Assembly (NCBI RefSeq): GCF_006345805.1
Contig: NC_043010.1
Location: forward strand, 59,706,001 to 59,770,000
Direction of reading: 5' to 3'
Length of the DNA stretch: 64,000 nt
Origin: Octopus sinensis
Lineage: Eukaryota
This document shows positions 1,561 to 56,306 of the stretch, in pieces; position 1 is the first letter of the stretch, and the number at the start of each line of letters is the position of its first letter. The translations under genes and the position numbers were made by a program. The notes under the pieces are model-generated. The model had not been told where the DNA came from and made no database searches. It worked only from the letters and a program-made list of their open reading frames with translations.

Positions 1561-2599
1561 CAAAACAAAGTGATAAAAATGGTCAGACATTTGTAGGTAT
1601 CATTTAATCATAACATAAAATTATAACAATAATTTCTGACTTCATCCTCTTAGATTCACCTATTTATGTCTCCCTAAGCAAGTTACTTAAGAAAAATTAT
1701 AGTTTTTTAAAAACCATAGTTATATATATATATATTGAAGCCTAGTAAAAGAAAAATATTTTCTAACGTCGCATGAATCTTATCCAAGGGAGCTAACTAT
1801 AGAAATTACAATGCACTGTTTCCTGTCAGATTTTACAGCATGGTTTTCCATGGAAACCACATTTCTTGTTATTTTGCCCTGAGCACATGAATTCTCGTAT
1901 TTTTCTCGAATCCTCTTACCTATATTCATGTCAGATTAAAAAGAAAATATGGTATGATGATTTCTTTATGCAGTTTTTGGAAAGTATTTTCAAAATAAAG
2001 TATTTTCCAAATAAGTGTAAGCAGGAATGTTGTTATATTTCGGGATAGCAATTATTTTGTTTTTGCCAAATAACCACATACACAAATGCATAAATATATA
2101 TACAGGAGACTATTAAATTATATCGAATAAAATAATGAGGAAAAAATATTTAGCAGTTTAAACAGTCTTTGAACCCTTAAGATTATTTAGTGGATATGTG
2201 TAGCAAACTTGGTGAGTTGTGACAAGATACAATTTTTCAAAGTTATGTTTGCCACCTTCAAAATATTAAGCCCTTATAAATGAATAATGAAGGAACTGAG
2301 CTTTCCTCAGTGATTATATATGAGATGAAAATTGTACTTGAATGAAGTTGTTAAATCTAGTGGCTTCATATTTCTTATCATTTACACTTCATTATACAAA
2401 GAGAGATAATATTTATTATTGAAAATTACTTCATTTTATATCTTATGGTAGGATGCAATACCTGACATGAATATGTAAATAACTGTTCAAATGAATTATT
2501 TTTGACCCACATTCTCAGTTAAATATTTATATTTATCTTTCAGATTAATAAAGTGAAACCTCAATATTTGTGGGCACTGTATTAACATCAAGACTAGAG

Positions 2600-5500
2600 A
2601 TGCAGTTGTTTCTGTGTGTTTTACTGACTTTCTTCCACTGTTCTCTAAGTGAAGATATCACATATCATGTTAAAGAAGAGAATAGTCCCTATACCTATGT
2701 AGGGGACATTGCTACTGACTTACAGAAATCAGACAGCTCCTTCTTAAAGAATAAGGATTTAATTACATTTAGTCAACTACAGCAAAAGGGAGAACAGTTG
2801 TTCAATGTGACGAGAACAGGTAAACTGTACACTGTTGAGACATTGGATGCTGAGTCTGTGTGTAGTTATGAGAAAGAATGTTTTGAAATCGTTAAAGTTG
2901 CAGTTCACAAATCCAAGACATTTATGAAGATCTTAAAGATTAAAGTCATCATAGAAGACATCAATGACCACCAACCTGAGTTTCCTAATGAAGAAATCAA
3001 ACTGATCTTTGGAGAAGGAGACAGAGATGGTATGAAGAAACCCATACCTAATGCCATTGACAAGGATATGAGTCCAGAAAACAGCTTAATTACTTATGAA
3101 TTAGATGGTGGAGATAACTATTTTTCATTAAGTGTTTCCAAAGAAGATGATGGATTATCAACATTAGAAATTATATTAGAAGAGAAATTAGATAGAGAAA
3201 AGAAGGACGATTATGATATTGAAGTCATTGCTAAAGATGGAGGAACTCCACCAAAACAATCTGTTTTAAATGTGAAAATATCTGTGGAAGATCAAAATGA
3301 TAATAAACCACAATTTTCTCAACGTATCTACAATGTTTCTATAGAACATAAACATAAAAAGACTATTCCAGTAGTCACATTATCTGCCAGTGATTTAGAC
3401 ATTGGCAGGAATGGTAAAATATCTTTCTATTTCGGTCGAAAAACAGATGCTAAAATGAAAGAATACTTCCATCTAGATGAAAATTCTGGGAAATTATTCT
3501 TAGAAAAACCTTTAAATCTGGATATAAAAGAGTCATTTAAATTGTATGTAAAAGCTAAAGATAATGGTATGCCTCCTCTCAGTTCCATAGCAACGGTTAT
3601 GGTAAATGTTATCAACCAACACAACAATCCCCCAAATATTGATGTGAACTTTATTTCTACACAGAATCACAACACAGCTACCATTCTGGAAGACATCAAA
3701 GTTGGTAGTTTCATTGCTTATGTGATGGTCACTGACAACGATGTTGGACACAATGGACAGGTGAACTGTCATATCAAAGATGACACATTCAAACTACAGT
3801 CAATGGGATCGAAGGAATATAAAATAGTTCTAAAGAAAGCAGTAGACAGAGAGACACAGGAACATTATCACTTTACTGTGTCGTGTGAAGATAAAGGATT
3901 ACCTGCTCTGAAAACTGATAAAGATCTGTCAATCCAAGTGTTGGATGTGAATGATGTAGAACCACACTTTACGAAAGACACATTCAAGTTCCTTACCTAT
4001 GAGAATGACAAAGCTAATTTCCCTATTGGCTTTATCAATGCTACAGACCCAGATATTGGTAAGGGAGGTGAATTGTCTTATTCTCTGAGAAATAAACAGC
4101 AATATCGTCTGCCATTCCAGATTATCAACTCTGGCTTTATTTCAACAAACCAGTCTTTAGACAGAGAACACAGAGATTTCTATGAGTTTGAGGTTTTTGT
4201 GAAAGACAATGGAAGCCCATCTCTGAATAACACAGTGAATGTTGAAGTGGAAGTATTGGATAGAAATGATAATGCTCCATATTTTACATTTCCTAGTGTT
4301 GACCCTTTCACTCTTAATGTCCACTATCATCCGCAAAGTAAGAACGACATCACAGTTCTGAAAGCATCTGATATAGACAGTCACATGAATGCTTTTCTCA
4401 GGTACGAAATCGTTTCAGGTAACGAGAGACAGTTATTTAAACTAGACTCGTTCACTGGTGTGTTATCTTACTCTCGCACAGTTTACCAAAACGATGCCGG
4501 ATCATATGAGCTTGAGTTTGTTGTGAAAGACAGTGGTACTCCAGTTCTGTCAGCAACAACTAGTGTGTCTTTGACACTGACTGTTAGTAACAAGACGTCA
4601 CCAATGTTCACAGCTGTGCACCTACCAAGTGATAACACAATAGATGCGACATTGTTGATTATCATTGTAGTAGCAGCTGTGATAGTATCTATAGCTATTG
4701 TGGTTTCTATAACCCTGTGTATTGTGAGATGTAACAATGTGAGAAATAGCTCATCTGAAAGAACTGCAGAAGAGAAACAGGCATACCAATGTCGCAATGA
4801 GATGAGACAGTTGATCTATCAAGGTAACAACAGTGTACCTGTGATGTCAGGTAATCGAGGAGAGATGTCAGACAGATATGGTCATTCGAGGAGCCATTAC
4901 TATCCTGAAGACTGGAAGACATCGACAATGAGCAGAACTCTTCAAAAGTCTACAAAGGTAAGCTAATGTATAATTAAGAATGATTTTACTAAATGTTTTA
5001 TGTTTGACAATTATGGTTTTGTTGACCAATTTTATGGAATATTTTAGATTGTAAGTCTTCTAAAGATAGATTATTTCTCATTCAGAAAATACAATTCCTG
5101 GTATGGTGATGAATATTTTTTACTGTATTGATTTATTTATGATTATTTCTGTCTGTAACTTGTAAAATGATAGGATCCCAGACAACTTGGGGGGAAACCC
5201 CTCAGTAAAAACTATTGAGATAATTCTCTTGAGTCTGATGGTGAAGACAGCATGCCAAACTCTGCATCTCTTTTGAAACCAACATTGCATTGGAAAAACA
5301 GTCATGCATGCACCCATGCACACACATACACACACACACATATACGCATACACAGATTCCAAGCTTACATTATCCTTCCAGAAAGAAGTCCCTGAAAGGC
5401 CATAAATATTTTCCTTAATCTCCCATATCTCATATGAATCACTTGGTTTAATCCTTAATCCTCAAACTGTAACTCTCGGGAATCTCTGACTTCACACATT

Positions 5501-8500
5501 GACTTACATTTGCTTACATTTATTTTACAGCAGAAATACAGTCAACCGATTGAGGTGACATCTTATGGAGACAACAGACCATCTTCTCACTATCCCACTG
5601 ACACACTGGCCAGTCGTAAGAGCAGTGGACAGTGCTGGAGTGAGCGGTCAAGCAGACAGTATGAAGAAATACCAGCAATGTCAGGTAAAACAATCTCATT
5701 CATTTATTTTTTTATTATTACCAGTGGTACACAATGGAGTGAACCCTAAATAAAGCACAGGATTTTGATGACATCAATTTTTTTATATATTCAATCCAGA
5801 ACGCGGCTAACATTTACATGAATTAGTAAGGATTATCACTTTAAGATGACCTTCAATGTTTGTGGACAACACACAGTTGTCCATTTGTTTTGGGCTCAGT
5901 GTTTCATCGCGTGCTCAACTACATATATTCATATTGTTATAAACTTAGCTTTATTACAATTTGTAATAAAGAACATGGAATAATTACATGATGGTCCATT
6001 TCATCAGGTGATGATGGTGGCACAACGGCAGCAGTGGTCTCCATCCAACACGACCTCATCAAGTTGAAAGATTGTAGTAAAGAATCTGATCTTACATTTC
6101 CCCCCCAGCATAAGGTCCTTCTCATTTATGCATAAACCTGCATCTTTTTGCCAGTTTCTGTATGGCCTGCAACATTCAGATTTTTTCTTCTTGATATTGA
6201 AATAAGTTGCATGTTTTTTCACATTCCAGATGTGTTTGTATAATATTGTATTCTTCTCTTCTAAATGTCTGAAGAAAGACGTATAATTGAACTTTCTGTA
6301 GACTTTGTACATGGTATTAAGACTTAGTTTGATGGAAGTGACTTTTGCTTCATATTTGCTCATTGCAACTTTTGTCTTTCTCAATGTGCAATCAATTTAG
6401 ATTAATTTGCTTGATTTTCTATGTTATGAGATTTGTTTCGTTGTGATTACAGTTCAGCATCTTGCTAGCTTTTCTGTAGTTTCCACATCTATGTATTTCT
6501 TATAGCGCATCTGTGTGTGTGTTGCTGTGGGACATCTTTCCTTTGGTGCTCTTGTGTTGTTTCCCATAGCTGGTTGTCTGGGAGTTCCTGATCTCTCTGG
6601 CAGGGACTAGCCTGTCTCATTCTTCTCACTGCTATTTCCTCAGACAGCCCCGATGGCGCTCTACACCCACACTTGTTATAAACATGCCTATTCTCTTTGG
6701 TGTTAAGCAATGCCTGCAATATTATTATATTGTATCAACCAACCAGAGATTCCTGCTGGGAAGGCAGATTCTACCTTTGCATAGTAAGAAATTTATAAGG
6801 AAATATAGACCATTGTGTGGAGAGTGCAGTGAATTTAGGTAGGTTAATTAATGAGTAAAATAAATGGGATTTTGAGAGAATTAATTATTTGTGCTGTTAA
6901 GTAGAAAAATAACTTATTTTTATTTAGGAAGTTTTATAAAATGAAGATTGTGTGATAATTAAGTAGTGGACCTTTTAATTAGGTTGTGATGTGATTTTCT
7001 CCTTTCCTGTGTCTGAAAGATGTATGATTAAAATAAACTTTAAATTTATCTTCTACTATACATATATCCGCCATTCACATTTTCACCATCTTCTCTCTCT
7101 TCTCCCTTACTCCTCACTTCCTTCAACTGGGGTAACTATGTATTTCCTTTACCTCAAGACACCTCCCTCAGTACTATACCCCACCCCTGCTGAGTGGTCT
7201 TGTCTTGGTGACCTCATCAAGTACCCAGTTCGAAAAGTACTCACTTTGCTAAGTAACCAGTACACTTTGGAAAGTGGTTGGCATTAGGAAGGGCATCAAG
7301 CTATAGAAACCAAAGCAAGTGCAGTCTTCTGACTTGCCAGCTGTTGTCAAACTGTCCAACCCATGCCAGCATGGAAAACAGATGTTGCTTAATGATGATG
7401 ATTTAAGTTTGGTTCGGTAGAGGTGACATCTGTTCTGTATGTGCTCATTTCAGCATTACAGGATTGAGGAGGCATGGATTTGTTTCTGCATTTGGATTTA
7501 GCATTGGTAATTTCGTTGGTTTACATGCTATGAGATTCTCCACATCAGAAGTAATGGTTGATAAATGTAGAGCAATTAGGACTAGATTTTAGCCATATAT
7601 TAATTATGACATTTAATAAAAAGGAGTGTGTGGACCAGATGTTGTTCAGGTATCTTTTCTTAGTAATAGATGATGAAGTTTTCAGAATATATATAAGATC
7701 TATGTTTGATTCTACTAGCTTCTAATGCATTATGAGAGACCATTTGAAGATTACTTAGTTTTTGAATGACAAATGAAACTTGAAGTAACAATATATTATA
7801 ATATATTAAACATGCAATATGTTAGTTACCTGGCTGCACCCCCCCACACACACACACGCAAAGACCTATCAATAGATGCACAAATGTACATATCATTTCA
7901 TAAGGGTCTACATAAATATGTACACACCCTGAAGACATATTTATCTACTTTGTTTATCACACACACACATTTTTAGATTATAATTTTTTGTGTTCATAAT
8001 AGATTTGCTTTGCACTTGTCTTATCTGACTGTTCCATTTTAAACCCTTAGAAGATGTTATTTGTGGATGCTCTCCTCTTTTCAGTCTATATAGCATCTAT
8101 TATTAACATCAACACTTCTCTAAGTTGAAATGGGATTATTTTGCCTGTAACGACATTTGTGCCAATCAAATTGAATTCAGTCAATTATAATTATTATAGC
8201 GATAAGTTAAAAATATACCCACAAACCCTTTTCCCCACAAGTTAAAGCATAGCTTACATTGCTGACATCTCGTCAGTTGTTCATTGTAATGCTTGAGGGT
8301 CTAATTGTGTTGTCAGATATCATTCTTTTGTGGTTGTTATTTTTATAGATCACTGACTACACATAAAATGATTGATTTCTAATGTCAGTGAGTCAATACT
8401 TATTGTCTCCATGAACTATGTAGTAAGTTTATTTGATATATATATTTGTATATGTGTGTTTCAGGAATCTATGGTGGTGCCCCACCCGATGTATCAAGCA

Positions 8501-8586
8501 CCAGTGAGAGAGACCATTACCAAGACAGATATGTGAAACCTCCAGAGAGACAGTTACCTTCAACACCAGATGTTGTTGTCAGTTAA
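2600..8586 (+). CDS. PCDH: Protocadherin G1 (6 EC + TM + cytoplasmic tail), join(2600..4957,5531..5684,8465..8586), 877 aa; exon 1 lies upstream of the window
   Basis: Signal peptide MQLFLCVLLTFFHCSLS; cadherin motifs DINDHQPEF, LDRE, DQNDNKPQF, DVNDVEPHF, DRNDNAPYF; EC1 Cys-X5-Cys (CSYEKEC); TM LLIIIVVAAVIVSIAIVVSITLCIV. Acceptor tttcag|2544, donor AAG|gtaag after 4957, acceptor cag|cag at 5531, donor G|gtaaaa after 5684, acceptor tttcag|8465. Phases 0 and 1 join in frame to ...PDVVVS*. Symbol is family-level only. Confidence 0.93.
5990..6400 (+). mobile_element. Possible highly degenerate CR1/L2-type reverse transcriptase remnant
   Basis: Fragments translate as DD...IQHDLIKLKDC and TLYMVLRLSL, weakly like LQxDLxxLxxW and LYxxLVRPxLEY; many stops. 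Confidence 0.3.
6480..6720 (-). mobile_element. RTE-clade LINE C-terminal fragment (degenerate)
   Basis: ORF 6489..6719 reads ALLN..RHVYN..LSEEIAVRRMRQASPCQRDQELPDNQLWETTQEHQRKDVP, matching the RTE C-terminal pattern ALNISWxxHxTN..I..RRLRxAGHCxRxxE..LWxPxHGxRxRGRP. Confidence 0.65.
7255..7403 (+). mobile_element. Partial non-LTR 3' end / SINE with (GAT)n tail
   Basis: gtggttggcattaggaagggcatc...tccaacccatgccagcatggaaaac...gatgatgat, same family as 38775..39033. Confidence 0.55.
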
Positions 8587-8902
8587 GTGAGACTGAGAAA
8601 GGAACACAACAGAAATAATATCTCACCTTCAACATTCACACAACATTTAAAAACAACACAAATATTTTAGTTAATTAACAATATTTCCCCACATATGACT
8701 GGGAATATTCCTATGTGTTCCACACAGTATCTTTTATGTTTGAACATCTCTAGAAATGAAGACCTACATAACAGCATTAGGCATGAATAAGCAATGTGCA
8801 GTCATATAAGACAACGTTAAGGTAAATATTGTAAGAAATTATAGATAGTTTTTTACTCTGGTGAAATGTAATTCATATTCTAAAGTTTTCATCACAATAT
8901 AC

Positions 8903-8908: not shown

Positions 8909-9016
8909 TCTCTTAATTTCATGACCTAAAATAATTATGTTACATTTTAGAAAATATTTTATATAGTTTACGTATCATTAAATTTTCCAAATACGTTAAT
9001 AAGTATGTAATAGGAG

Positions 9017-9511
9017 ACTATTATTGTGAATATCGTATTTACATTTTAAATTACACACACATTAACAACATCAGCCATATTTTGTTAATATAACCTCTCT
9101 GTTCTAAGGATTTCTATGTCAGTCTCTCTCCACATCAGACATGTTGGTGTTATATAGACTTATCATGGCTGACTGTTAGTGGAGCTGAGAGTGTGTGTTC
9201 TCTCACTACTCTGTCTTTGTGTGTGAGAGGCAACATCTAGTCTGAGAGAGGCTGTAGTAAGCATCACCCATCCTACTCCTCCTCCTCCTCCCTTTCACAC
9301 ACACTCACACACATACATACACTAAACACCACACATCCACAAAGGAAGACTGAGAGGGCACTGCTGGTTCCCACTGACTCACCACCAACACTATTCCATC
9401 AACATGAAGCCATTGTCACACCATAGCAGCAGTGACACAGACAACCATTAACAACAGAACATTGGGACCAAGTCACAGTTTATACAACAAAGGATTTTAC
9501 ACAATGAAGGT
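9017..9511 (+). promoter_or_regulatory. Conserved promoter / 5' exon-1 cassette of G2
   Basis: ~500-bp block near-identical in six copies, ending acaATGAAG|gtaagtttgtt (strong donor); TATA-like ttatatag at about 9150; (TCC)n and (CA)n tracts; uORF1 9404..9451. TSS not determinable from sequence. Confidence 0.75.
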
Positions 9512-12263
9512 AAGTTTGTTTATTCCATATTATTTATTTAGTCATGTAAAGTAACAGTTTCCTGTACATAGGCATATTGGAACATCAGACTGGAGTAATT
9601 TAATGGTGGCCATATTTGATTTGTATTATTCCTTTTTTAATGACTTTCTTTTCTATTGTGGCTTTCAAATATTTTGTTGATAATTGTAGGGAAGCAGGAA
9701 TTGTTAAGGAATATGATTTGTAATCATTTTGATGTGATGTTTTTTTCACACATCTTTGTCGGATCTTTATGAATTCACTGCAACTTTCATTTCTTTGCTA
9801 AACCATTATATTGCAGTTGACGTGCCTCTGCCTTTCACTGGAATATTTTTCTTGTTGAATATTTACATTTATAAATGCTTTATGGAAATAATTTGATACC
9901 GTGTAAAATATAAACACATTATTGGAAATATAAATAATAGTAAAAGAAGGTTAAAATATGTATGATCCTAGGTATATATGCTATTGTGTGAGTGTACGCG
10001 TCTATATATAATCAATGTATTTGGCTGCGTTTCTATGTATGTATATGTACAATATATAATTGCTGCTTCTCCTGTTTTCCTTCATCTTTATGCTTTGTCT
10101 TTATACAAATTTTAAATACTACCTATCATGACTAGATCATTTCTGAACACTTGAATCACATTTGCTAATTAGAATTATTTTGTATATTTCAACCATTAAA
10201 ATGTAACAGTTTTATAATTTCTAGCTCAGTTTCTTCTATGGATATTTTACTTTATTTATAAAAACGATTATTTGTTGGTTAAACTGTCTTTATTGTTTCT
10301 GTGTTGTATTTCATTGCTCTTCTCAAATATATCGTTAGGTAATATTGTCTCTCATAGAGTCACGATAGGGAATTGGTATGGTCTGAAGTCTTCTGGGTTC
10401 TGAGTTCAAATCGCACAGAAACCAAATTTACTTTACATCCCTTTGGGCTTCATAAGCTACTCCTTATTTACAGGAGTTGATATCCCTTCTCTCCTTTTCT
10501 ATCTCTCCCCCCACATCTTTTTCTCACACACACAATTGAATTTTTGAAAGGGTCCAAGAAACATAAGCGTTCACACCACACCCAGTCCCCACCATTTGGT
10601 GGACACAACAAAAGACAACAACAGAATTATGTTAATGACCTTATATAAATCTCTTGTAAACCTGCCTACTGATGGATGAATTGAATATTGTTTAATTATA
10701 CAAATGGATAAATGATTTGAAATATTTTTATAGATTGATTTGGATAAAGTTGACATCCAGACATAGCAACTGGGCAAAGATTAAACTACTTTTGACTAAA
10801 TATGGGATGTTATGTTGACGAATAAGTTGATAGATATTAATTAAATGGTATTAGATGTCATGTCGTTTTGTTGAAATTGTGATTGTGACCTACATCATTA
10901 ATGGTCAGTGAGAGAACTAGTGTTGGTTTCTCCACTTTCTTGAAATAGCAGCCAAATCTCACTCAAATCACAGCCTACCATCCTAAAAAAGAAAGAAGAC
11001 ATTACATGGCAGAGTTCACGATACGTTACTTTTAAAGAAAAGTTGGGATAGCCACTTCTGGAATGTCTGCTCACTCAAAGCCAATTTGATTCTAAACAGC
11101 AACCTATTTTATCTTGATATAAGGGAATTCCAGTTGTATAAATCAAAAGATGTAGTTTCATTCTCATTTTGCGATGGATATTCTATTTTCAGTTTCCTCT
11201 TTTGTTTCTGTAGAGTTGTTGTAAAAATGTCTTCTTATAATATTTACCTTTTCCTCCTGTTCATGGTACATTATATTGGGATCGTTTCTCTAACATTGTT
11301 CTTATAGCTGTGATAACTTGAGTGTGTATTTAAAGAGGGGCATACATCTATAAATATAATTTTACCAGTGTGACATCAGAGTAATTTCTAAATAATCGAA
11401 TTATGGTTATTTTTACAACATTTACTATTTCATAAATTATTAATGAGGTTTTATTTTAATAAGAAATTATATCGTTTTCTAACAGGTCTGTTTGCTGATC
11501 TGCAAGGGAGCTAACTCATAATTACTGGTGCATTGGCTGTCTTCTATTGCAATACAATATTGATGTTTGTGATGACCAAATCCTATAGATTTATTCTGTA
11601 GAGTAGTATAGCACTAACTCGTAATGCTGTAAATGTAGAAATCCTAATACTCTACTTCACTCTCAGGTGATTAACAAAAGCTTTAAACGCTAGATTATCA
11701 TGTGTTATAATTATTAATCAAACTGTCTTGATAGTATCATGAGTTTTTGTTTATTTTTCTCTATAGAAAGTATCTATAAAGAATGAACTAATTAATCATT
11801 AAGATGAGAATATGAATAGACACCTGAAATGTTGAGTTATGAGGATTATATTATATCAGTAAAGTATCAATAAAAAGATTTGTAAGCAGTTATGAGATGT
11901 AATTCTTTGATTTTATATCTGCACTCATTAGAATATGAAGATATTTTTTGGAAGTAAAAAGAGAGGGAACTAAGTGGTATTCAGGGAAATTAAGGTTCTC
12001 AAAGAATATTTTAAAGGTGGAATCAACAAATAAAATCTAATCTCTGTCTCCTCTTCATTGCTACTTATATTTCACAATAAAAGAATCTTCTTTATTCATA
12101 GAAATGGCATCCTTTCACATTAATATAAATCTGGTTATTTAAAAGCCACTTCAAATAACATTACAACTTATTTTTTATTACTTAAAGGCTATTTATTTAT
12201 TTTCCAGATGAAAAATTTGAAATCAACATTTCCTTGGATATTGCATTAACGTCAAGACCAGAG

Positions 12264-17800: not shown

Positions 17801-17849
<49 letters not shown>

Positions 17850-18828: not shown

Positions 18829-19134
18829 GAATCAAACACCTTGGGAATATTTTCGCGGATGTAGAATAATTTAGTAGCACTAGAAGTGAATAATGGGTTT
18901 AAACACTGTAGTTAGGAAAAGCAGAGTTAAGGAAAGTAATCACAGATAGACATTATACCTGGAAATACAATCTACACTTAAGAATGTAAATTAAATTATC
19001 TTCTAAGTAAATAATAGATAAATAAATTATTTTGTAAATATTGATATTTTACAAAATCTATTTTCATAGTTTACATAAACTTGAATATTCCATAGATATC
19101 CTTATATGAGACTTAGTTTTGAATTAGGTCAGAC

Positions 19135-19639
19135 ACTCACAAACTATTATTGTCAATATTGTATTTACATTTTAAATTACACACACATTAACAACATCAG
19201 CCATATTTTGTTAATATAACTCTCTGTTCTAAGGATTTCTATGTCAGTCTCTCTCCACATCAGACATGTTGGTGTTATATAGACTTATCATGGCTGACTG
19301 TTAGTGGAGCTGATAGTGTGTGTTCTCTCACTACTCTGTCTTTGTGTGTGAGAGGCAACATCTAGTCTGAGAGAGGCTGTAGTAAGCATCACCCATCCTA
19401 CTCCTCCTCCTCCCTTTCACACACACTCACACACACACACACACACACTAAACACCACACATCCACAAAGGAAGACTGAGAGGGAACTGCTGGTTCCCAC
19501 TGACTCACCACCAACACTATTCCATCAACATGAAGCCATTGTCACACCATAGCAGCAGTGACACAGACAACCATTAACAACAGAACATTGGGACCAAGTC
19601 ACAGTTTATACAACAAAGGATTTTACACACAATGAAGGT
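19135..19639 (+). promoter_or_regulatory. Conserved promoter / exon-1 cassette of G3
   Basis: Copy of the cassette; uORF1 ATG at 19530; ATGAAG|gt at 19632..19639. Confidence 0.75.
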
Positions 19640-20550: not shown

Positions 20551-21805
20551 CCTGTAAGGAGGAGAGAAGGAAAAAAAAAATGATAAGATTTGAGTAAGTT
20601 GAAGAAGCAATGATTTACTCCTCAAGATATAAAAATAGAAGAAAGCCAAAAGCAAATGATGTTAATATAACAGTCTAGAACAAAAATTCAAAAGACTTCA
20701 GTTCTGCAGGGTCTGTTGCTGGGGCTATGGTCTGCTGTCTCTTGCTGCAGTGAAGACGACAGGCAATGGCTAGTTAAAGATTGCTGCAAAACCAGCTGGT
20801 GTCTAGTTTATCAGTGCTGGTATAATAGAGATGTGGTGTGTGGTCAATGGCTGCTGCCAAAGACAAAGAGGGGCTGAAACTGGTGTTTATATAACCATGG
20901 GGTGGCTCCACAGACTGAGATGGGGTTTTTTCCTGCATTGGGAACAAACTGTTGTAAGCACAAGATTGGGCAGTGAAAACCAATATTTAAAATGTTTGAT
21001 ATTTGGAAACAGAGTTTCAAATCAAATTGTATGTTGAGAGTTTTGTGTGTAGATTCTTTAAATTTTGTGCTCTTTTACTGGTTTAATTGTTGTTATTGTT
21101 GGGGATACTTAGCGCCTCCAGCAGTCATAAAATGAGTTTTCAGTAAACAACTTTGATTACATATAATAATAAATCTGTTTGTGTAATCCTTACAAAGTTG
21201 ATGTTACAGTGTGTGAACTTCTAAGGCCTACTACATTAGTAAAGGTCAATGGTCCCACATCTGTCAGTGTCCTTTATAGAACAATTATAATAAATCTAAC
21301 TAAAACTGTTCCTTCTCCATATACCATGGCACTGAAAAAGAAATCAGTACATATTATACATGTGAGATACTTTCTTGCTGGACTTCATAGTTGGGTGAGC
21401 ACATTATACTCAAATGTGTTTTATACATCAGTAAGTATGCTTATAAGTCAATCATTAAACTGGTAAACATAAAATAATCCAGCACGATACAAAGGAGTTA
21501 TTAAACTTCACACATAATTTATAAAATTGAATTTGTTTTTAAACTCAATTTGTTGAATGCAGTGAAAAACTAACCTCCATGCATTCCTTTGGACTTCCTA
21601 TAAAGCAGAAAGGCTTTGTATGTGTTGGAAATTAATGTTAATCTAAAAAATTGCTTGTTTCTGTATTCGATTAAAAAATATTAATGCATTCAAGTAAGAA
21701 AGAAAGTTTATTTCAAGTCATTCCTTAAAAAAACTATTTTCTATTTCAGACTGAATATTTGGAGACATCTCTCATCTGGATATTGTATTAACATCAGGAC
21801 CAGAG

Positions 21806-26550: not shown

Positions 26551-26989
26551 GTGAGGTTGAGAGAGGAACACAACAGAAATAATATCACCTTCAACATTCA
26601 CACAACATTTAAAAGCAACACAAATATTTTAGTTAGATAATAATATTGCCCACATATGACTGAATATCTTCAAATATGTTTGAGAGAATATATTTTGTGT
26701 ATATCTTGGGAATATTACTCCAGATGAACTAGACACTAACAATTACAGATATCAAGAATCCATTGGTAACATTGTATAGTTAAATGAACAATCATTAAGT
26801 GAAATATTGTGCAGAAGTAGACATTATGCCTGGGGAAATTCAATTTATACTTGAAAATGTGATTTTAATTATAACAAAAAAATAAACAATGGATAAGTAA
26901 TTAATATTTCAGAGAAATATTCTGTTTAGTTGATATATCTCTTTAAATTTCCCATAGATATCCTTATATGAGACTTTGTTTTGAATTAG

Positions 26990-27491
26990 GTCAGACACCC
27001 ACAAACTATTATTGTCAATATTGTATTTACATTTTAAATTACACAAACATTAACAACATCAGCCATATTTGTTAATATAACCTCTCTGTTCTAAGGATTT
27101 CTATGTCAGTCTCTCTCCACATCAGACATGTTGGTGTTATATAGACTTATCATGGCTGACTGTTAGTGGAGCTGATAGTGTGTGTTCTCTCACTACTCTG
27201 TCTTTGTGTGTGAGAGGCAACATCAAGTCTGAGAGAGGCTGTAGTAAGCATCACCCATCCTACTCCTCCTCCTCCCTTTCACACACTCACACACACACAC
27301 TAAACACCACACATCCACAAAGGAAGACTGAGAGGGAACTGCTGGTTCCCACTGACTCACCACCAACACTATTCCATCAACATGAAGCCATTGTCACACC
27401 ATAGCAGCAGTGACACAGACAACCATTAACAACAGAACATTGGGACCAAGTCACAGTTTATACAACAAAGGATTTTACACACAATGAAGGT
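26990..27491 (+). promoter_or_regulatory. Conserved promoter / exon-1 cassette of G4
   Basis: Copy of the cassette; uORF1 ATG at 27382; ATGAAG|gt at 27484..27491. Confidence 0.75.
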
Positions 27492-28870: not shown

Positions 28871-29507
28871 TGAAACAATTAAATTTTCTCTACTCCACAG
28901 CTCATACTGAATAAGAAAAATTACTGTGAAAATTACTATTAAAATGTGTTATGTATCAATTCAAAATTAGATTAAGTAAAACATATCCTTAATAGTATTG
29001 ATCATCATCATCAGCATCAAGTAGATCTTGCTTGGATTATCGATACTTTGATTATCAATTGTCAACAGTCTCAGAAGCTTCATACCTCGTAGAAACCTGA
29101 GATAAATGCAAATACATGTCTGAAGTTGAATTTTTCTCGGGTTTCTATATGTAAAGCTTCAGTGAAAAACCTGTAATCTAAAGTTATATATTTTCTATAA
29201 TTACCATTCACTAATACAATACCAATTAATATTCAAATGACATCCATTGTATTTTTATTACCTATTATCTGTTCTATGTATTTAATAAATTATCGTAGTA
29301 AAAAAGTCATTACATTGACAATATATTCCGTTTGAATGGCATAGGCTTATTTTAGTTATGCACAGACTTAATTTGTTTAAAAGATATTTATGCATTGAAG
29401 TAAATTGAAAGAAGCCAAAATTGCTCATTTAGACAAAATGTTTTCTGTTTCAGATCGAATTTTTAAAGCTATCCTTTCTTTGGATTCTGTATTAACACCA
29501 AAACAAG

Positions 29508-35625: not shown

Positions 35626-36064
35626 GTGAGACTGAGAAAGGAACACAACAGAAATAATATCACCTTCAACATTCACACAACATTTAAAAACAACAGAAAT
35701 ATTTTAGTTAGATAATAATATTGCCCACATATGATTGAATATCTTCAAATATGTTTGAGAGAATATATTTTGTGTATATCTTGGGAATATTACTCCAGAT
35801 AAACAAGAAACTAACAGCTTCAGATATCAAGAATCCATTGGTAACAATTCATAGTTAAGTGAACAAACTTTAAGTGAAATATTGTGCAGAAGTAGACATT
35901 ATGCCTGGGAAATTCAATTTATACTTGAAAATGTGATTTAAATTATAACGAAAAAATAAATAAATGATAAGTAATTAATATTTCAGAGGATATATTGTAA
36001 TAAGTTGATATATCTCTTTAAATTTCCCATAGATATCCTTATATGAGACTTAGATTTGAATTAG

Positions 36065-36565
36065 GTCAGACACTCACAAACTGTTATTGTCAATATTGTA
36101 TTTACATTTTAAATTACACACACATTAACAACATCAGCCATATTTTGTTAATATAACCTCTCTGTTCTAAGGATTTCTATGTCAGTCTCTCTCCACATCA
36201 GACATGTTGGTGTTATATAGACTTATCATGGCTGACTGTTAGTGGAGCAGATAGTGTGTGTTCTCTCACTACTCTGTCTTTGTGTGTGAGAGGCAACATC
36301 TAGTCTGAGAGAGGCTGTAGTAAGCATCACCCATCCTACTCCTCCTCCTCCCTTTCACACACTCACACACACACACTAAACACCACACATCCACAAAGGA
36401 AGACTGAGAGGGAACTGCTGGTTCCCACTGACTCACCACCAACACTATTCCATCAACATGAAGCCATTGTCACACCATAGCAGCAGTGACACAGACAACC
36501 ATTAACAACAGAACATTGGGACCAAGTCACAGTTTATACAACAAAGGATTTTACACAATGAAGGT
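36065..36565 (+). promoter_or_regulatory. Conserved promoter / exon-1 cassette of G5
   Basis: Copy of the cassette; uORF1 ATG at 36458; ATGAAG|gt at 36558..36565. Confidence 0.75.
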
Positions 36566-39470: not shown

Positions 39471-40217
39471 CTCATAATTATAGAAAAGAATAAGTGTAGA
39501 TAAATGTCTATCACATAACATTGAATCAAGTTAATTTAATATGTACAAATAATTAGATAATCATTATATAATTGATTATGTTATCATGTGGGTCATGGAG
39601 AGCAAAACATGAAATTTCTGAATTGTTATTGAAATCCGTTGTTTTTTATTCTTTCCATTATTTGTGTATATAATCAAAATGAGCATTTCACATTGAAATT
39701 AAATACAATGTTGTTGTGATAGTTATGTCACTATGACAGCTTCTAAAATATATTACATGTTAGATAAAGGGTATAATGGATAGCATCTGAATGCAATTTT
39801 TGAGTATTAGTGAGGGTAATTATATAAAATATATTACCCGGGTTAGTGGACACATAATAAATATAATGTGTGAAAGATTAAGATGATAAAATGGGTAGAA
39901 ATTAGTGAAACACAAGGGAGTTATAAATTTAAAAGAATATTTATGCAAATAGATTTCTTATTGAACTATGTGTGTTGAATAAAATGACATAAAAATCATC
40001 TCTGAGGATTTTATGGAAAGCAGGTAGTTTTATAAGCGCTAGAAAAGATTATAATTACATATGATTGCTAGTCACTTAATTTGTTTAAAAAATATTCATG
40101 CATTGAAATAAAGCGAAACTAGTCAAAATTGCTCATTGAAACAAAATATTTTCTCTTTCAGACCAAATTTTTGAAGCCATCTTTTTTCTGGAAACTGCAT
40201 TAACATCAAGACCAGAG

Positions 40218-44076: not shown

Positions 44077-44514
44077 GTGAGGTTGAGAGAGGAACACAAC
44101 AGAAATAATATCACCTTCAACATTCACACAACATTTAAAAGCAACACAAATATTTTAGTTAGATAATAATATTGCCCACATATGACTGAATATCTTCAAA
44201 TATGTTTGAGAGAATATATTTTGTGTATATCTTGGGAATATTACTCCAGATGAACTAGACACTAACAATTACAGATATCAAGACCATTGGTAACATTGTA
44301 TAGTTAAATGAACAATCATTAAGTGAAATATTGTGCAGAAGTAGACATTATGCCTGGGGAAATTCAATTTATACTTGAAAATGTGATTTTAATTATAACA
44401 AAAAAATAAACAAAGGATAAGTAATTAATATTTCAGAGAATATATTCTGTTTAGTTGATATATCTCTTTAAATTTCCCATAGATATCCTTATATGAGACT
44501 TTGTTTTGAATTAG

Positions 44515-45022
44515 GTCAGACACCCACAAACTATTATTGTCAATATTGTATTTACATTTTAAATTACACAAACATTAACAACATCAGCCATATTTTGTTA
44601 ATATAACCTCTCTGTTCTAAGGATTTCTATGTCAGTCTCTCTCCACATCAGACATGTTAGTGTTATATAGACTTATCATGGCTGACTGTTAGTGGAGCTG
44701 ATAGTGTGTGTTCTCTCACTACTCTGTCTTTGTGTGTGAGAGGCAACATCAAGTCTGAGAGAGGCTGTAGTAAGCATCACCCATCCTACTCCTCCTCCTC
44801 CCTTTCACACACACTCACACACACACACACTCACTAAACACCACACATCCACAAAGGAAGACTGAGAGGGAACTGCTGGTTCCCACTGACTCACCACCAA
44901 CACTATTCCATCAACATGAAGCCATTGTCACACCATAGCAGCAGTGACACAGACAACCATTAACAACAGATATTGGGACCAAGTCACAGTTTATACAACA
45001 AAGGATTTTACACAATGACGGT
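44515..45022 (+). promoter_or_regulatory. Conserved promoter / exon-1 cassette of G6
   Basis: Copy of the cassette; uORF1 ATG at 44916; ATGACG|gt at 45015..45022. Confidence 0.75.
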
Positions 45023-45854: not shown

Positions 45855-46930
45855 TGCCAGTCAACGAGGCACACAATGGCAGTCTTCTATTTAATATTGA
45901 CAATGAATTGAAATGTTTTGAAGCAGACCAGGCTGAACAGTATGAGGGCACAATGTCTCATGTTGTTGCTGTTGTGGTTCTCTTTTGCACCTGACTAATT
46001 GTCAGACATAACACCAACATCATTTGCCTCGTTACAGTCATGCTGTCTAGTGATTTGAGTCCAATTCTGATTGTAAAGGGGACACCTGCTGATAAGTTGA
46101 AAGCATGTCTGAAGGCATCCTGTGATATGAGAAGAGATAAAAGACTTCTTCTTTCTACCAACTTGGGAGTTGCACTTAATAGAGATGTCCAAGTAACCCA
46201 GTGCTCCAAGGTTTTCCTTCAGCTGGGGGCAATGGTCACTTACCATTTGACACTGTAAATGGAGATGTCAAAATGCCAATAAATATTATGAAACAGTTGT
46301 GAATACATCTCGAGACATACTACTGAATATTTATTCTAGATTCCCACAGAATTATAGAAACCATGAGTAGCTTTCCGAACATGCCATCCTAGCTCCTAAA
46401 GTGACACTCTGCAGGATATCAATGCTATTGTCATACAGCAGGTATCTGTCAAAATCTGTTCTCACTGTAGTTGATATTAGCATTGTTGGTAGTTATCCAA
46501 CAGAATCACTCAATTCTCTTCATTCCATTGTGGTCTCTCCTTACAATCCCGAAATGAATGGAGGAGCATGCATTATGTTGTTAAGAAATTTGGATACAAT
46601 AAATTTCCATTACAGTACAAGACCCGCTGACAACTCTTTTATGCTTCATGTGATGAAAGCCACCATTATGACTGGTTTTGTCATGAGAAAAGATGGTTAC
46701 ATTCCCCTCATTGCTTTCATCTAACTAGATATGCTTATGCAGTTTCCCTGTGATGCTGTCATATTTTTGAGGCCATCATCAGGTCTCAAGGACTGTCCCC
46801 CTGGGTTACTACACTCTAACTTACAGGTCCACATTTGTCTCATGATCAGCTGTATATTGCATGTTGATGTGGTAGGTCAGAGATTTTTTTTTTTTACCTT
46901 CAGTTCACCAAACCATGAAACAATTAAATT
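45855..46930 (+). mobile_element. Degenerate Helitron Pif1-helicase fragment in G6 intron 1
   Basis: GTPADKLKACLKAS; YPTESLNSL..CIMLLRNL..KATIMTG; same intron position as the G4 and G5 copies. Confidence 0.8.
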
Positions 46931-47555
46931 CTCTCTACTCCACAGCTCATACTGAATAAGAAAAATTACTGTGAAAATTACTATTAAAATGTGTTATGTA
47001 TCAATTCAAAATTAGATTAAGTAAAACATATCCTTAATAGTATTGATCATCATCAACAGCATCAAGTAGATCTTGCTTGGATTATCGATACTTTGATTAT
47101 CAATTGTCAACAGTCTCAGAAGCTTCATACCTCGTAGAAACCTGAGATAAATGCAAATACATGTCTGAAGTTGAATTTTTCTCGGGTTTCTATGATATGT
47201 AAAGCTTCAGTGAAAAACCTGTAATCTAAAGTTATATATTTTCTATAATTACCATTCACTAATACAATACCAATTAATATTCAAATGACATCCATTGTAT
47301 TTTTATTACCTATTATCTGTTCTATGTATTTAATAAATTATCGTAGTAAAAAAACTATTACATTGACAATATATTCCGTTTGAATGGCGTAGGCTTATTT
47401 TAGTTATGCACAGACTTAATTTGTTTAAAAGATATTTATGCATTGAAGTAAATTGAAAGAAGCCAAAATTGCTCATTTAGACAAAATGTTTTCTGTTTCA
47501 GATTGAATTTTTAAAGCTATCCTTTCTTTGGATTCTGTATTAACACCAAAACAAG

Positions 47556-50500
47556 ATGCTGCTGTTTCTATGGGTTTTACTCACTTCCTTCCATTGTTCC
47601 CTAAGTGAAGATATCACATACCATGTTAAAGAAGAGAATAGTCCCTATACCTATATAGGGGACATTGCTACCGACTTACAGAAATCAGACAGCTCCTTCT
47701 TAAAGAATAAGGATTTAATTACATTTAGTCAACTGCAACAAAAGGGAGAACAGTTGTTCAATGTGACGAGAACAGGTAAACTGTACACTGTTGAGACATT
47801 GGATGCTGAGTCTGTGTGTAGTTATGAGAAAGAATGTTTTGAAATCGTTAAAGTTGCTGTTCACAAATCCAAGACATTTATGAAGATCTTAAAGATTAAA
47901 GTCATAATAGAAGACATCAATGACCACCAACCTGAGTTTCCTCAGAAAGAAATCACACTTTACTTTGGGGAAGGAGACAGAGATGGAATGAAGAAACACA
48001 TACCTAATGCTATTGACAAAGATATGAGTCCAAAAAACAGCTTAATTACTTATGAACTGAAAAAGGATAATGGACATTTTTCCTTATCAGTTTCAAAAGA
48101 AACAGATGAGATATCAGCATTAGGAATTATTTTAGAAGAGAAATTAGACAGAGAAAAGAAGGACAGTTACAATATTGAAGTCATTGCTAAAGATGGGGGA
48201 ACTCCACCAAAACAATCTGTTTTAAATGTTAAAATATCTGTGGAAGATGAAAATGATAATAAACCACAATTTTCTGAACGTATCTACAATGTCTCTATTG
48301 AACATAAGCATAAAAAGAATATTCCTGTAGTCACATTATCTGCCAGTGATTTAGATATTGGCAGGAATGGTAAAATATCATATTATTTTGCAAGGAAAAC
48401 TGCTGAGAAAATGAAGAGACATTTTAATTTAGATGAAAATACTGGAAAATTACATTTAGCTACATCTTCAAAAATTGATAAGGATGAGTCTTTTAAATTA
48501 TACATTGAAGCCAGAGATGATGGCGCATCTCCTTTGAGTTCCATAGCCACTGTTTTGGTAAATGTTATCAATGAACACAACAATCCCCCAAATATTGATG
48601 TGAACTTTATTTCTACACAGAATCACAACACAGCTACCATTCTGGAAGACATCAAAGTTGGTAGTTTCATTGCTTATGTGATGGTCACTGACAATGATGT
48701 TGGACACAATGGAGAGGTGAACTGTCATATCAAAGATGACACATTCAAACTACAGTCAATGGGATCGAAGGAATATAAAATAGTTCTAAAGAAAGCAGTA
48801 GACAGAGAGACACAGGAACATTATCACTTTACTGTGTCGTGTGAAGATAAAGGATTACCTGCTCTGAAAACTGATAAAGATCTGTCAATCCAAGTGTTGG
48901 ATGTGAATGATGTAGAACCACACTTTACGAAAGACACATTCAAGTTCCTTACCTATGAGAATGACAAAGCTAATTTCCCTATTGGCTTTATCAATGCTAC
49001 AGACCCAGATATTGGTAAGGGAGGTGAATTGTCTTATTCTCTGAGAAATAAACAGCAATATCGTCTGCCATTCCAGATTATCAACTCTGGCTTTATTTCA
49101 ACAAACCAGTCTTTAGACAGAGAACATAGAGATTTCTATGAGTTTGAGGTTTTTGTGAAAGACAATGGAAGCCCATCTCTGAATAACACAGTGAATGTTG
49201 AAGTGGAAGTATTGGATAGAAATGATAATGCTCCATATTTTACATTTCCTAGTGTTGACCCTTTCACTCTTAATGTCCACTATCATCCACAAAGTAAGAA
49301 CGACATCACAGTTCTGAAAGCATCTGATATAGACAGTCACATGAATGCTTTTCTCAGGTACGAAATCGTTTCAGGTAACGAGAGACAGTTATTTAAACTG
49401 GATTCGTTCACTGGTGTGTTATCTTACTCTCGCACAGTTTACCAAAATGATGCCGGATCATATGAGCTTGAGTTTGTTGTGAAAGACAGTGGTACTCCAG
49501 TTCTGTCAGCAACAACTAGTGTGTCTTTGACACTGAGTGTTAGTAACAAGACGTCACCAATGTTCACAGCTGTGCACCTACCAAGTGATAACACAATAGA
49601 TGCGACATTGTTGATTATCATTGTAGTAGCAGCTGTGATAGTATCTATAGCTATTGTGGTTTCTATAACCCTGTGTATTGTGAGATGTAACAATGTGAGA
49701 AATAGCTCATCTGAAAGAACAGCAGAAGAGAAACAGGCATACCAATGTCGCAATGAGATGAGACAGTTGATCTATCAAGGTAACAACAGTGTACCTGTGA
49801 TGTCAGGTAATCGAGGAGAGATGTCAGACAGATATGGTCATACGAGGAGCCATTACTATCCTGAAGACTGGAAGACATCAACAATGAGCAGAACACTTCA
49901 GAAGTCTACAAAGGTAAGCCTTACTTCAATAAACAATCTGTTAGTAAATAATCTGCAATTAACTATGATTTAGCTTCAGTGTTTTATATTTGTGTTTTAT
50001 CCAGTGTTTTATAATTGACATTACGTTTCACTTGACCAATTTTACAGTATTGTTTTGCTTCATAATGTCCAAAATATATCTTATGTATGGTTAAGAAAAT
50101 ACCATTCCTGATATGGTGTTGAATACTTATTTAATTTTTTTTACTGTGATTACTGTTGTCCATTTTTTGTTAGATATTTCATGGCAAATGAAAATCTGAG
50201 AAGACATTTTCCAGGATAATTAGACATCTTTGTATACTTTACAGTCTGTCATTTTTAATATTTGTCAATAGGATTGCATCTGATTTTGTGGAAACTACCT
50301 AGTTAGAACAATTCAAATATCTTTGTAGTCTTTACTTCTGGTGATTAAAGCTCCCAAATCTAACATTACTGTACACACACTGACAGTCTAAACTTGCATT
50401 ATCCTTTCAGGAAGGAATCAATTATAAAAGTTTTGTTAATAATTGTGACTTCAGCTAACTTGTACTGTGTATAATTCTTGTGGGAAATGAAGAAACATAA

Positions 50501-51982
50501 TGTGGGAAAAAGTGATGTCATAGTTTTGTCAGTGGAGGAATGACAGTACTCCTGTCTTCTTACCAGTGAAGGATTAACAAATTTTAGTAACAGCTTCAAG
50601 AAATTTTACTGATTAAATACATATAAAATATTGTCTTTAATATAGAACAAAATAGTCAATACCACCAAAAGCCAGTAAATTTTGTTATTATTACATATTT
50701 TAGTGTCAATCATGAATGTTATGTTTATAGTATGTCTTGTTACTATTATATTTAACAGCAGAAATACAGTCAACCCATTGAGGTGACATCTTATGGAGAC
50801 AACAGACCATCTTCTCACTATCCCACTGACACACTGACCAGTCGTAAGAGCAGTGGACAGTGCTGGAGTGAGCGGTCAAGTAGACAGTATGAAGAAATAC
50901 CAGCAATGTCAGGTAGGATAACAATGATTTGACTTTTCCTATTCATAAATATCCATATTCACATGAAGTAGAAGAAATATCTACCAGGGAATTATAAATT
51001 TGTGTGGCCTTATCTTCACCTGATTCATGGATGGATTAATACTTATTGTAACAGCTTAGTGAATATTCATCAAATATGAAACTATATTAGTGTCTTACTT
51101 TCTACAATGGCACTAAATATATTAATCTGACACCCATTTGCAGCCGATTGAATAAAGAAAGAAATATTCATGTTGTTTACTACCAAATTAAACAGACGTT
51201 TGAAAATATATTATTCTGCTTTATGAGACACTGTTTTGTATTGTCTTTTTAAACCTGGTAAAAGAAGCAAAAATAAATAGAATTCAAAACATGCATGTGT
51301 GTGTGTCTATACACACACACAGAGTAGCTCAATCACTTTCTTGCTTTACACTTATGAAGTGTCATGCTCAAAACTCTCAGCCTGTGAAACACTTTGTAGC
51401 TTCTGGGGATTAAAAATAAAGAATTATGTCTATTGACTTATTACTTATGTAATTTTATGGTAAATGAATGGAATCTTAATTAGTTTTGGGTCAGTAAGTA
51501 AACATATAGCACATGTGAGAGTGCATATGGTCTTAACAACAACCCATTATTGTTACCATGGTAGGAAAGTTGAACAATATGTAAACCAAGGGACTGCTCA
51601 GTATAGACTGATTTTTATTTAACCATTCCAGTCTAAGGCATTATCTTAATAATAATCGTATGATTGGGGTTTGTAATGTTCTGTGATGTTGTAGGATACT
51701 GAGACACGATTTCAATGTAACATCTTTAATTATTGATGTTGTTCTTCATTTTAGTCCATTGAATGTTGTGGACAAAACATTGATTACTAACGACAGTAAA
51801 TACCCATTGACCATATGAACTGTGTAATGAGTTTACTTGATGTATATGTTTGTGTTTCAGGAATCTATGGTGGTGCCCCACCTGATGTATCAGGCACCAG
51901 TGAGAGAGACCATTACCAAGACAGATATGTGAAACCTCCAGAGAGACAGTTACCTTCAACACCAGATGTTGTTGTCAGTTAA
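47556..51982 (+). CDS. PCDH: Protocadherin G6, join(47556..49913,50759..50912,51861..51982), 877 aa
   Basis: Intact ORF and homologous splice sites; exon-2 acceptor tttcag|47502; 5' exon donor after 45020. Confidence 0.93.
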
Positions 51983-52424
51983 GTGAGACTGAGAAAGGAA
52001 CACAACAGAAATAATATCACCTTCAACATTCACACAACATTTAAAAGCAACACAAATATTTTAGTTAGATAATAATATTGCCCACATATGACTGAATATC
52101 TTCAAATATGTTTGAGAGAATATATTTTGTGTATATCTTGGGAATATTACTCCAGATGAACAAGAAACTAACAGCTTCAGATATGAAGAATCCATTGGTA
52201 ACATTGTATAGTTAAGTGAACAATCATTAAGTGAAATATTGTGCAGAAGTAGACATTATGCCTGGGAAATTCAATTTATACTTGAAAATGTGATTTAAAT
52301 TATAACAAAAAAATAAACAAATGATAAGTAATTAATATTTCAGAGGATATATTGTAATAAGTTGATATATCTCTTTAAATTTCCCATAGATATCCTTATA
52401 TGAGACTTAGTTTTGAATTAGGTC

Positions 52425-52930
52425 AGACACTCACAAACTGTTATTGTCAATATTGTATTTACATTTTAAATTACACACACATTAACAACATCAGCCATAT
52501 TTTGTTAATATAACCTCTCTGTTCTAAGGATTTCTATGTCAGTCTCTCTCCACATCAGACATGTTGGTGTTATATAGACTTATCATGGCTGACTGTTAGT
52601 GGAGCTGATAGTGTGTGTTCTCTCACTACTCTGTCTTTGTGTGTGAGAGGCAACATCTAGTCTGAGAGAGGCTGTAGTAAGCATCACCCATCCTACTCCT
52701 CCTCCTCCCTTTCACACACACTCACACACACACACTCACTAAACACCACACATCCACAAAGGAAGACTGAGAGGGAACTGCTGGTTCCCACTGACTCACC
52801 ACCAACACTATTCCATCAACATGAAGCCATTGTCACACCATAGCAGCAGTGACACAGACAACCATTAACAACAGAACATTGGGACCAAGTCACAGTTTAT
52901 ACAACAAAGGATTTTACACACAATGAAGGT
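52425..52930 (+). promoter_or_regulatory. Conserved promoter / exon-1 cassette of G7
   Basis: Copy of the cassette; uORF1 ATG at 52821; ATGAAG|gt at 52923..52930. Confidence 0.75.

Positions 52931-55714: not shown

Positions 55715-55716
<2 letters not shown>

Positions 55717-55750
<34 letters not shown>
55717..55750. repeat. (CA)n microsatellite
   Basis: Directly visible. Confidence 0.95.
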
Positions 55751-55753
<3 letters not shown>

Positions 55754-56306
55754 CATGCATGCATAGGAAGTAGAGAATTATTTGAAGGCAAAACTGGCTA
55801 CCAAACATGACTGCTCTAACAACAGCACAGAGTTCAAATGTCCCTTTTGAATTTGTCTTTTTTGTGCAGGATACATGAACTTGAATAATATAATCTGTAC
55901 AAAAATTATAATGAACCTCACTAAAATCTATTTTTTTCCCATATAACACAATACAGATTACTAATTCGTTAAACTGGTAAATGTAAAAGAAACCAGCATC
56001 GTCCGAGGGAATTGCTAGTTTCTAACATTATTTACACAAATGAATTTTCTATTAGAATGAATTTGATGAAAGCAAAGACACATATACAAGATTGAACCAT
56101 TTCTTAAGCCGCCAAAAAATGGGTTCTTTGTAAGTAATGATTGGAATGATTAATCATCAGTTCATTAGTTTAAAAATATCAATGCATTTAAGCAAATGAA
56201 ATAATGTATTTAAGCTCAATAATTAAAGACAATATTAATTTCTATTTCAGACTGAATATTTGAAGCCATCTCCAACCTGGATACTGTATTAACATCAGGA
56301 CCAGAG

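Follow-up and report, generated by a model that had tools for sequence, protein, structure and literature searches.

A conserved upstream ATG without a conserved upstream peptide in the predicted split 5′ leaders of tandem octopus protocadherin genes

Seven tandem protocadherin genes (G1–G7) lie in the 64,000-nucleotide (nt) stretch of the Octopus sinensis genome that we analysed here (contig NC_043010.1, forward-strand positions 59,706,001 to 59,770,000; this whole stretch is hereafter called the window), and each appears to have a split 5′ leader, composed of a very conserved non-coding exon 1 that ends in ATG plus one codon followed by a gtaagt donor, and of the first 54 or 56 nt of a large coding exon (41–60 nt across the subfamily). 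A preliminary description of the window had proposed that the ATG at the end of exon 1 opens a 15-codon upstream open reading frame (uORF) that controls translation and keeps its length and frame in all protocadherin paralogs. Comparison with relatives revealed that the upstream ATG (uATG) is kept in a good initiation context in 33/37 exon-1 copies, whereas the length, frame and peptide of the uORF are not conserved, so that the proposal of a conserved uORF is supported for the start codon but not for the frame that follows it. We consider it moderately probable that the feature acts as an ordinary uORF that is independent of its peptide, its conserved uATG in a shared first exon lowering the output of the main open reading frame (ORF).

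The uATG lies in the last six bases of exon 1 and has an A at position −3, and the gtaagt donor behind it, like the tttcag acceptor of the large exon, is kept in all copies. The 37 exon-1 copies come from four species and two families, and the uATG is present in 26/27 of those from Octopus and in 7/10 of those from Argonauta; the four losses are one ATA in O. vulgaris and, in Argonauta, one TTG and two copies with a diverged exon end. Six copies of ATGNNG directly followed by gtaagt (five ATGAAG and one ATGACG) were found in the window, all on the + strand, with no further copy on either window strand; exon 1 of G1 lies outside the window. Each copy closes a conserved upstream block:

8980..9509, + strand: G2 conserved upstream block and non-coding exon 1, ending in ATGAAG (9504-9509), then gtaagt
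19108..19637, + strand: G3 conserved block and exon 1, uATG at 19632-19634 (ATGAAG 19632-19637)
26960..27489, + strand: G4 conserved block and exon 1, uATG at 27484-27486 (ATGAAG 27484-27489)
36034..36563, + strand: G5 conserved block and exon 1, uATG at 36558-36560 (ATGAAG 36558-36563)
44491..45020, + strand: G6 conserved block and exon 1, ending in ATGACG (45015-45020)
52399..52928, + strand: G7 conserved block and exon 1, uATG at 52923-52925 (ATGAAG 52923-52928)

The roughly 530–560 nt up to the donor, of which the ~530-nt block is probably a promoter plus first exon, are 95–100% identical among the six window copies. Compared with the O. vulgaris and O. bimaculoides copies, identity is 82–89% overall and 94–99% over the last 200 nt, and the block is still recognisable in Argonauta at 70–82% identity. 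Conservation of this extent fits the main rival explanation, in which the ATG is a passenger: exon 1 and the ~530 nt preceding it would be kept as promoter or other regulatory DNA, or as a splicing signal, with the ATG lying outside most mature mRNAs or having no consequence for translation. This explanation is possible, if unlikely. It accounts for a block that is conserved as a whole, including a palindrome, and far better than the non-homogenised parts of the coding exons, for the loss of the ATG in four copies and for a downstream frame that varies freely. It does not readily explain why the ATG triplet persists while the adjacent bases on both sides vary (the following codon may be AAG, ACG, AGG, AAT or AAC), why the donor directly after the ATG is kept everywhere or why gene models start at the uATG where the frame allows; 5′ leaders are, moreover, generally depleted of ATGs.

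Further features were noted in and around exon 1. The G3 block contains a perfect palindrome, GGGAACTGCTGGTTCCC, at 19482-19498, as well as a (CA)n run, and the first 450–1200 nt of intron 1 are homogenised together with the block, the remaining intron being unalignable between most paralogs. A second ATGAAG, at the same position in all six exon-1 copies and 107 nt before the donor, opens a 15-codon ORF inside exon 1 (19530-19577 in G3; MKPLSHHSSSDTDNH, ending in TAA), and its ATG is kept in 26/28 aligned copies, Argonauta included; this ORF would be transcribed if the transcription start lies far enough upstream. A longer ORF running through exon 1 into the uATG was rejected on account of a CA-dinucleotide length difference just upstream, which shifts the frame between copies. 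We likewise rejected a structured RNA element in exon 1, as an Rfam search of the whole window returned no match and the exon-1 RNA fold was unremarkable (z = 0.02).

On the predicted splice from exon 1 to the proximal acceptor of the large exon, the uATG is followed by an in-frame stop in all seven window genes, for which a uORF is the natural reading of the sequence. All seven 42-nt segments and six exon-1 ends were exactly as the preliminary description had given them. A pyrimidine-rich CAG acceptor, with pyrimidines at 8–10 of the 10 upstream positions, stands directly before each segment, which then runs through 13 sense codons to TAA in 7/7 genes. Within this set W10 and L12 do not vary, and stops interrupt at least one of the two other frames in each of the seven. 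The main ATG follows 12 nt after the TAA in G4 and G6 and 14 nt after it in the remaining five genes. Alignment of the seven copies revealed a sharp boundary at the acceptor, the upstream intron being gappy and poorly alignable and the downstream sequence free of gaps apart from this 2-nt indel after the TAA. The exon-2 leaders are:

2544..2599, + strand: G1 exon-2 leader, 56 nt, INKVKPQYLWALY, TAA at 2583-2585, 14-nt gap to the main ATG
12208..12263, + strand: G2 exon-2 leader, 56 nt, MKNLKSTFPWILH, TAA, 14-nt gap
21750..21805, + strand: G3 exon-2 leader, 56 nt, TEYLETSLIWILY, TAA, 14-nt gap
29454..29507, + strand: G4 exon-2 leader, 54 nt, IEFLKLSFLWILY, TAA, 12-nt gap
40162..40217, + strand: G5 exon-2 leader, 56 nt, TKFLKPSFFWKLH, TAA, 14-nt gap; the same acceptor is used in XP_036365289.1, entered from an intron-1 exon
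47502..47555, + strand: G6 exon-2 leader, 54 nt, IEFLKLSFLWILY, TAA, 12-nt gap
56251..56306, + strand: G7 exon-2 leader, 56 nt, TEYLKPSPTWILY, TAA, 14-nt gap; 42 nt identical in the O. vulgaris ortholog

The junction itself is used in the annotation models of three paralogs, P0171, P0172 and P0012. The annotated coding sequences of P0171 (O. sinensis; MK joined to INNVNLPNSWTSRPEM..., gene call starting at L006:40747) and P0172 (O. vulgaris; MR joined to MNKLCSPYPWILSRTEM..., gene call starting at L001:2423) begin exactly at the exon-1 ATG and connect exon 1 to the acceptor named in the preliminary description, in both cases as an in-frame fusion. Besides the conserved splice sites, these paralog models are the only support for the predicted exon-1-to-acceptor junction. 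The collections searched yielded no transcript contig of the subfamily: ten clusters were without Logan members, and a search with the N-terminal 180 amino acids (aa) returned only a Logan fragment of 54% identity. A transcript contig from a distant relative (L002) has a 182-nt leader without ATG and is not informative for the window genes.

We then compared the window genes with their relatives in a survey of 38 subfamily genes, the seven of the window included, in which the acceptor was located and the frame was read in phase 0 from the exon-1 ATG. The loci came from the same O. sinensis chromosome (L003, L006, L010), O. vulgaris (L001, L009), O. bimaculoides (L004) and Argonauta hians, which belongs to a different family of Octopoda (L005, L007, L011). 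Leader lengths span the range given above, 56 nt being the commonest. The claim that the uORF is preserved in all protocadherin paralogs did not survive this survey, as 24/38 relatives differ by premature stops, deletions, in-frame fusions or overlaps. The continuation of the uATG frame was distributed as follows:

13 codons plus stop: 14/38 genes
12 codons: 2/38 genes
11 codons: 1/38 genes
9 codons: 1/38 genes
8 codons: 4/38 genes
7 codons: 1/38 genes
5 codons: 1/38 genes
3 codons: 2/38 genes
1 codon (MKV-stop): 4/38 genes
in-frame fusion to the main ORF: 6/38 genes
out-of-frame run past the main ATG: 2/38 genes

The 14 genes with 13 codons are the seven of the window, two others from O. sinensis, three from O. 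vulgaris, one from O. bimaculoides and one from Argonauta. Even among the other O. sinensis genes of the same cluster and chromosome, 13 codons plus stop are kept in only 2 of 10, one of them with F replacing W, and across the relatives W10 is replaced by F, S or C. With 14/38 genes at 13 codons and six in-frame fusions, the amino-acid sequence and length do not show the conservation that marks a conserved-peptide uORF. Several paralogs have an extra ATG in the main frame inside the exon-2 leader (L003:10037, L004:10031, L010:2964, L007:2208 and L007:10007), giving short annotated N-terminal extensions (MFLDTVLTSRLKM..., MSTILTSGPEM... and MEM...), so that the signal peptides of the family differ at their N-terminus.

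The residues that the preliminary description had singled out as invariant can be accounted for at the nucleotide level. When all 54- and 56-nt leaders were aligned, the 29 nt directly upstream of the main ATG (TGGATACTGTATTAACATCAAGACCAGAG) formed a conserved block, with 80–99% conservation per position, that holds the W, I, L and Y codons and the TAA, whereas leader positions 16–27 are free. One lineage had its uORF shortened to MKV-stop before O. vulgaris and O. bimaculoides diverged, and the untranslated remainder still matches the consensus at 28–31 of 39 positions, compared with 24–33 of 39 in copies with an intact uORF. Because the block is kept equally well where it is untranslated, its conservation is nucleotide-level and independent of translation in the uORF frame, and on this sequence comparison the 'invariant' W, L and TAA are part of a nucleotide block adjoining the start codon.

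Tests of chance and selection on the 13 codons pointed in the same direction. The openness of all seven window copies exceeds chance only marginally: column shuffling of the alignment left all seven stop-free in 3.8% of trials (P = 0.038), neutral simulation of the consensus down the tree from the observed distances gave P = 0.03, and the main-ORF frame is likewise open over the last 16–17 leader codons in all seven copies. Variable sites number 11, 7 and 10 at codon positions 1, 2 and 3, with no third-position excess, and the ratio of non-synonymous to synonymous differences (pN/pS) comes to 0.52 when the leader is read in the uORF frame, compared with 0.56 for the +1 and 0.95 for the +2 frame; the window copies show no frame-specific purifying selection, although with only 39 nt the test is weak. 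Over these 39 nt the copies differ pairwise by 0.35 on average, whereas the mean for the coding exon is 0.055. Once the homogenised mosaic is set aside, the value of 0.35 is comparable to the third-position differences of 0.15–0.31 in the non-homogenised part of the coding exon, so that the rate of leader evolution is close to neutral; the paralogs are older than the homogenised coding parts suggest. Between species, the O. vulgaris ortholog of G5 keeps 13 codons with three changes, all non-synonymous, and that of G7 keeps 13 codons with all 42 nt identical. O. sinensis and O. vulgaris are too close for such pairs to say much, the only informative ortholog being that of G5.

These results bear directly on the main inference of the preliminary description, that the length, frame or peptide of the 15-codon uORF is under selection, for example as a C-terminal W-I-L-Y arrest motif that would stall ribosomes at the TAA. 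Such selection would explain why the seven window copies are all open with the same stop position (P ~0.03–0.04), why seven further genes keep 13 codons, one of them in Argonauta, where the TAA stands 14 nt before the main ATG, and why the C-terminal end and the stop codon are the best-conserved part. We nevertheless think it improbable, given that 24/38 genes differ, among them eight of the ten further members of this O. sinensis cluster, that W is replaced in relatives, that neither the spread of variable sites nor the pN/pS values single out the uORF frame, that the G5 ortholog changed only at non-synonymous sites and that the MKV-stop lineage keeps the downstream block equally. The comparison of length, frame and dN/dS across other cephalopod clusters, which had been put forward as a check, came out against a selected frame as far as length and frame are concerned, with a changed length, a fusion or an overlap in 24/38 genes; within the window, pN/pS was no lower than in a wrong frame.

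The peptide-independent uORF that we favour would work as follows. The uATG frame continues into whatever the exon-2 leader of a given gene happens to encode. The window genes keep the ancestral 54/56-nt form of the leader, and their frame therefore runs 13 codons to the TAA in the 29-nt block. Ribosomes that start at the uATG would finish 12–14 nt before the main ATG, which would be too close for efficient re-initiation; a uORF stop at this distance is expected to be repressive under scanning and re-initiation. Initiation on the main ORF would then depend mostly on leaky scanning past the uATG, and less protein would be made from it, whatever the uORF peptide. Decay of the mRNA might add to this effect, as an early stop upstream of two further introns could trigger nonsense-mediated decay. 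For the seven window genes we infer that exon 1 is part of the mature mRNA, that the uATG is used and that translation is lowered.

Several observations weigh against this explanation. The inclusion of exon 1 and the use of the uATG in the seven genes are deduced from paralog annotation models and splice-site conservation, and exon 1 is ~99% identical among Octopus copies, so that the ATG could be a passenger. Repression cannot be essential, because the ATG is missing from four exon-1 copies and is turned into an N-terminal extension, of 17–18 residues, in six genes. In addition, the open frame in all seven window copies is nominally unlikely under neutrality (P ~0.03), and the arrangement of 13 codons, TAA and 14-nt gap recurs in one Argonauta gene; because of these two facts, some selection on the end position of the uORF is possible.

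A bolder version of the peptide-independent explanation, which we regard as doubtful, would treat the exon-2 leader as a per-gene translational setting that diversifies isoform dosage post-transcriptionally, with the window subclade selected for the 'strong' setting. The putative promoter and exon 1, with one fixed uATG, are near-identical between genes, and each paralog would add its own fast-evolving exon-2 leader. A 15-codon uORF ending 12–14 nt before the start would give strong repression, MKV-stop with its gap of 36–50 nt would allow re-initiation, and genes with an in-frame fusion would escape repression and have a longer signal peptide.

The preliminary description had also offered a switch-like alternative, in which the AG directly before the main ATG serves as an alternative 3′ splice site with a TTAAC branch point, so that exon-1 MK would be fused to the signal peptide and the choice of acceptor would toggle between repressed and productive mRNA. 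An AG does precede the main ATG in 7/7 window genes, and the motif TATTAAC, which two Argonauta genes have as TACTAAC, matches the branch-point consensus and is kept in 56-nt leaders. The AG is found in 19/38 genes, however, the others having GAA, GGA, AAA, ACA, GTT, GTG or ACC at this position, whereas a purine at −3 of the main ATG is present in 38/38; because of this difference, the AG is best read as start-codon context. One Argonauta gene with TATTAAC has CACC before its ATG, 5/7 of the window sites are GAG, the poorest type of acceptor, and only 4 of the 10 bases upstream of the distal site are pyrimidines, compared with 8–10 of 10 at the proximal acceptor. The stretch from the putative branch point to the proposed AG also includes CAG and AAG sites, and leaders that carry deletions lack the branch-point motif entirely. 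The combination of conserved AG, pyrimidine tract and branch point that the switch would need is therefore not found at the distal site, and we regard the switch as very improbable. Apart from the AG at the main ATG, the leader contains no other acceptor that would put the uATG into the main frame.

Compared with known systems, the octopus feature looks like an ordinary uORF, and the claim of a 15-codon peptide conserved in length and frame does not hold. Like ordinary peptide-independent animal uORFs, whose expected effect is damped translation of the main ORF, it has a uATG in good context upstream of the main start and a short frame that drifts in sequence and length behind a start codon that is retained. 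It differs from them in that the uATG lies within the two final codons of a distinct first exon and the uORF therefore spans an intron, in that this exon is near-identical across a whole tandem family and in that, from paralog to paralog, one and the same uATG opens a uORF, an overlapping ORF or an extended N-terminus of the main protein. With conserved-peptide uORFs and arrest peptides, such as the AdoMetDC MAGDIS uORF and cytomegalovirus gp48 uORF2, it shares a short uORF whose C-terminal residues and stop are most conserved and whose stop lies near the main ATG; unlike them, it shows no constraint at the amino-acid level, its length and frame are broken in most relatives, and the block is kept where it is untranslated. 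The vertebrate clustered protocadherins (alpha, beta and gamma) resemble the octopus genes in having tandem large ectodomain exons, each with its own conserved upstream element, and in a coding exon that is partly homogenised with a diverse EC2–EC3 region, as is known for the vertebrate genes. In the octopus, by contrast, there are no shared constant exons, each gene having its own two 3′ exons, and the conserved element lies 2–3.6 kb upstream and includes a spliced non-coding exon. A search of a paper library found no account of the 5′ exon, the leader or a uORF for protocadherins of cephalopods or of clustered loci.

Should the uATG be used, a large octopus family of neural recognition genes would carry a built-in translation brake whose strength differs between paralogs, and a post-transcriptional layer, of which the same search returned no description, would be added to the expression of protocadherin diversity. 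The more notable facts are the extreme conservation of the first exon with its upstream block and the mosaic homogenisation of the coding exons, which resembles that of vertebrate clustered protocadherins despite independent expansion.

The gene layout of the window was obtained by mapping 877-residue proteins onto it. The seven large ORFs, of ~800 codons each, encode an N-terminal Cadherin_2 domain (Pfam PF08266) followed by five PF00028 stretches (cadherin repeats), which identifies them as protocadherins. Per gene, a large exon of 786 codons is followed by two small coding exons of ~53 and ~43 codons. The G6 large exon is 100% identical over 786 residues to the Octopus sinensis protein XP_036365177.1, annotated as 'protocadherin beta-15-like'. 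A separate 3′ exon pair belongs to each of the seven genes, and constant exons shared between genes, as in a clustered locus of the vertebrate type, are absent. The coding features are:

47556..49913, + strand: G6 large coding exon, 786 codons, with signal peptide, cadherin repeats and membrane span
2600, 12264, 21806, 29508, 40218 and 56307, + strand: starts of the equivalent large exons in the other genes
50756..51979, + strand: two small 3′ coding exons of G6, at 50756-50914 and 51851-51979

The small 3′ exon pairs (for example 5528-5686 and 8455-8583) are 90–98% identical to each other at the protein level. The large exons (21806-24163 and its six equivalents) are homogenised as a mosaic: nt 1081–2280 are almost identical in all seven, third positions included (p 0–0.07), whereas nt 361–1080, corresponding to about EC2–EC3, have the third-position difference of 0.15–0.31 among paralogs cited above. 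This pattern looks like gene conversion sparing the specificity region, a process described for vertebrate clustered protocadherins.

An additional ORF lies within intron 1 of G5 (37861-38208) and G6 (46317-46673), the G6 copy containing a stop. In the RefSeq model XP_036365289.1 (P0002, 1012 aa), the G5 intron-1 ORF serves as an N-terminal coding exon that is spliced in the main frame to the usual G5 acceptor. A Pfam search of this G5 ORF returned no match; the ORF is probably derived from a repeat and its inclusion probably an annotation artefact of the open main frame. In the public annotation of O. sinensis and O. vulgaris (L001, L003, L006 and L010), several other proteins combine adjacent genes (P0130, 4439 aa; P0144, 3535 aa; P0146, 2561 aa, 'dachsous-like'; P0171, 1786 aa), and the gene range of P0012 extends over 24 kb. 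Gene models in these clusters are unreliable because the exons are near-identical.

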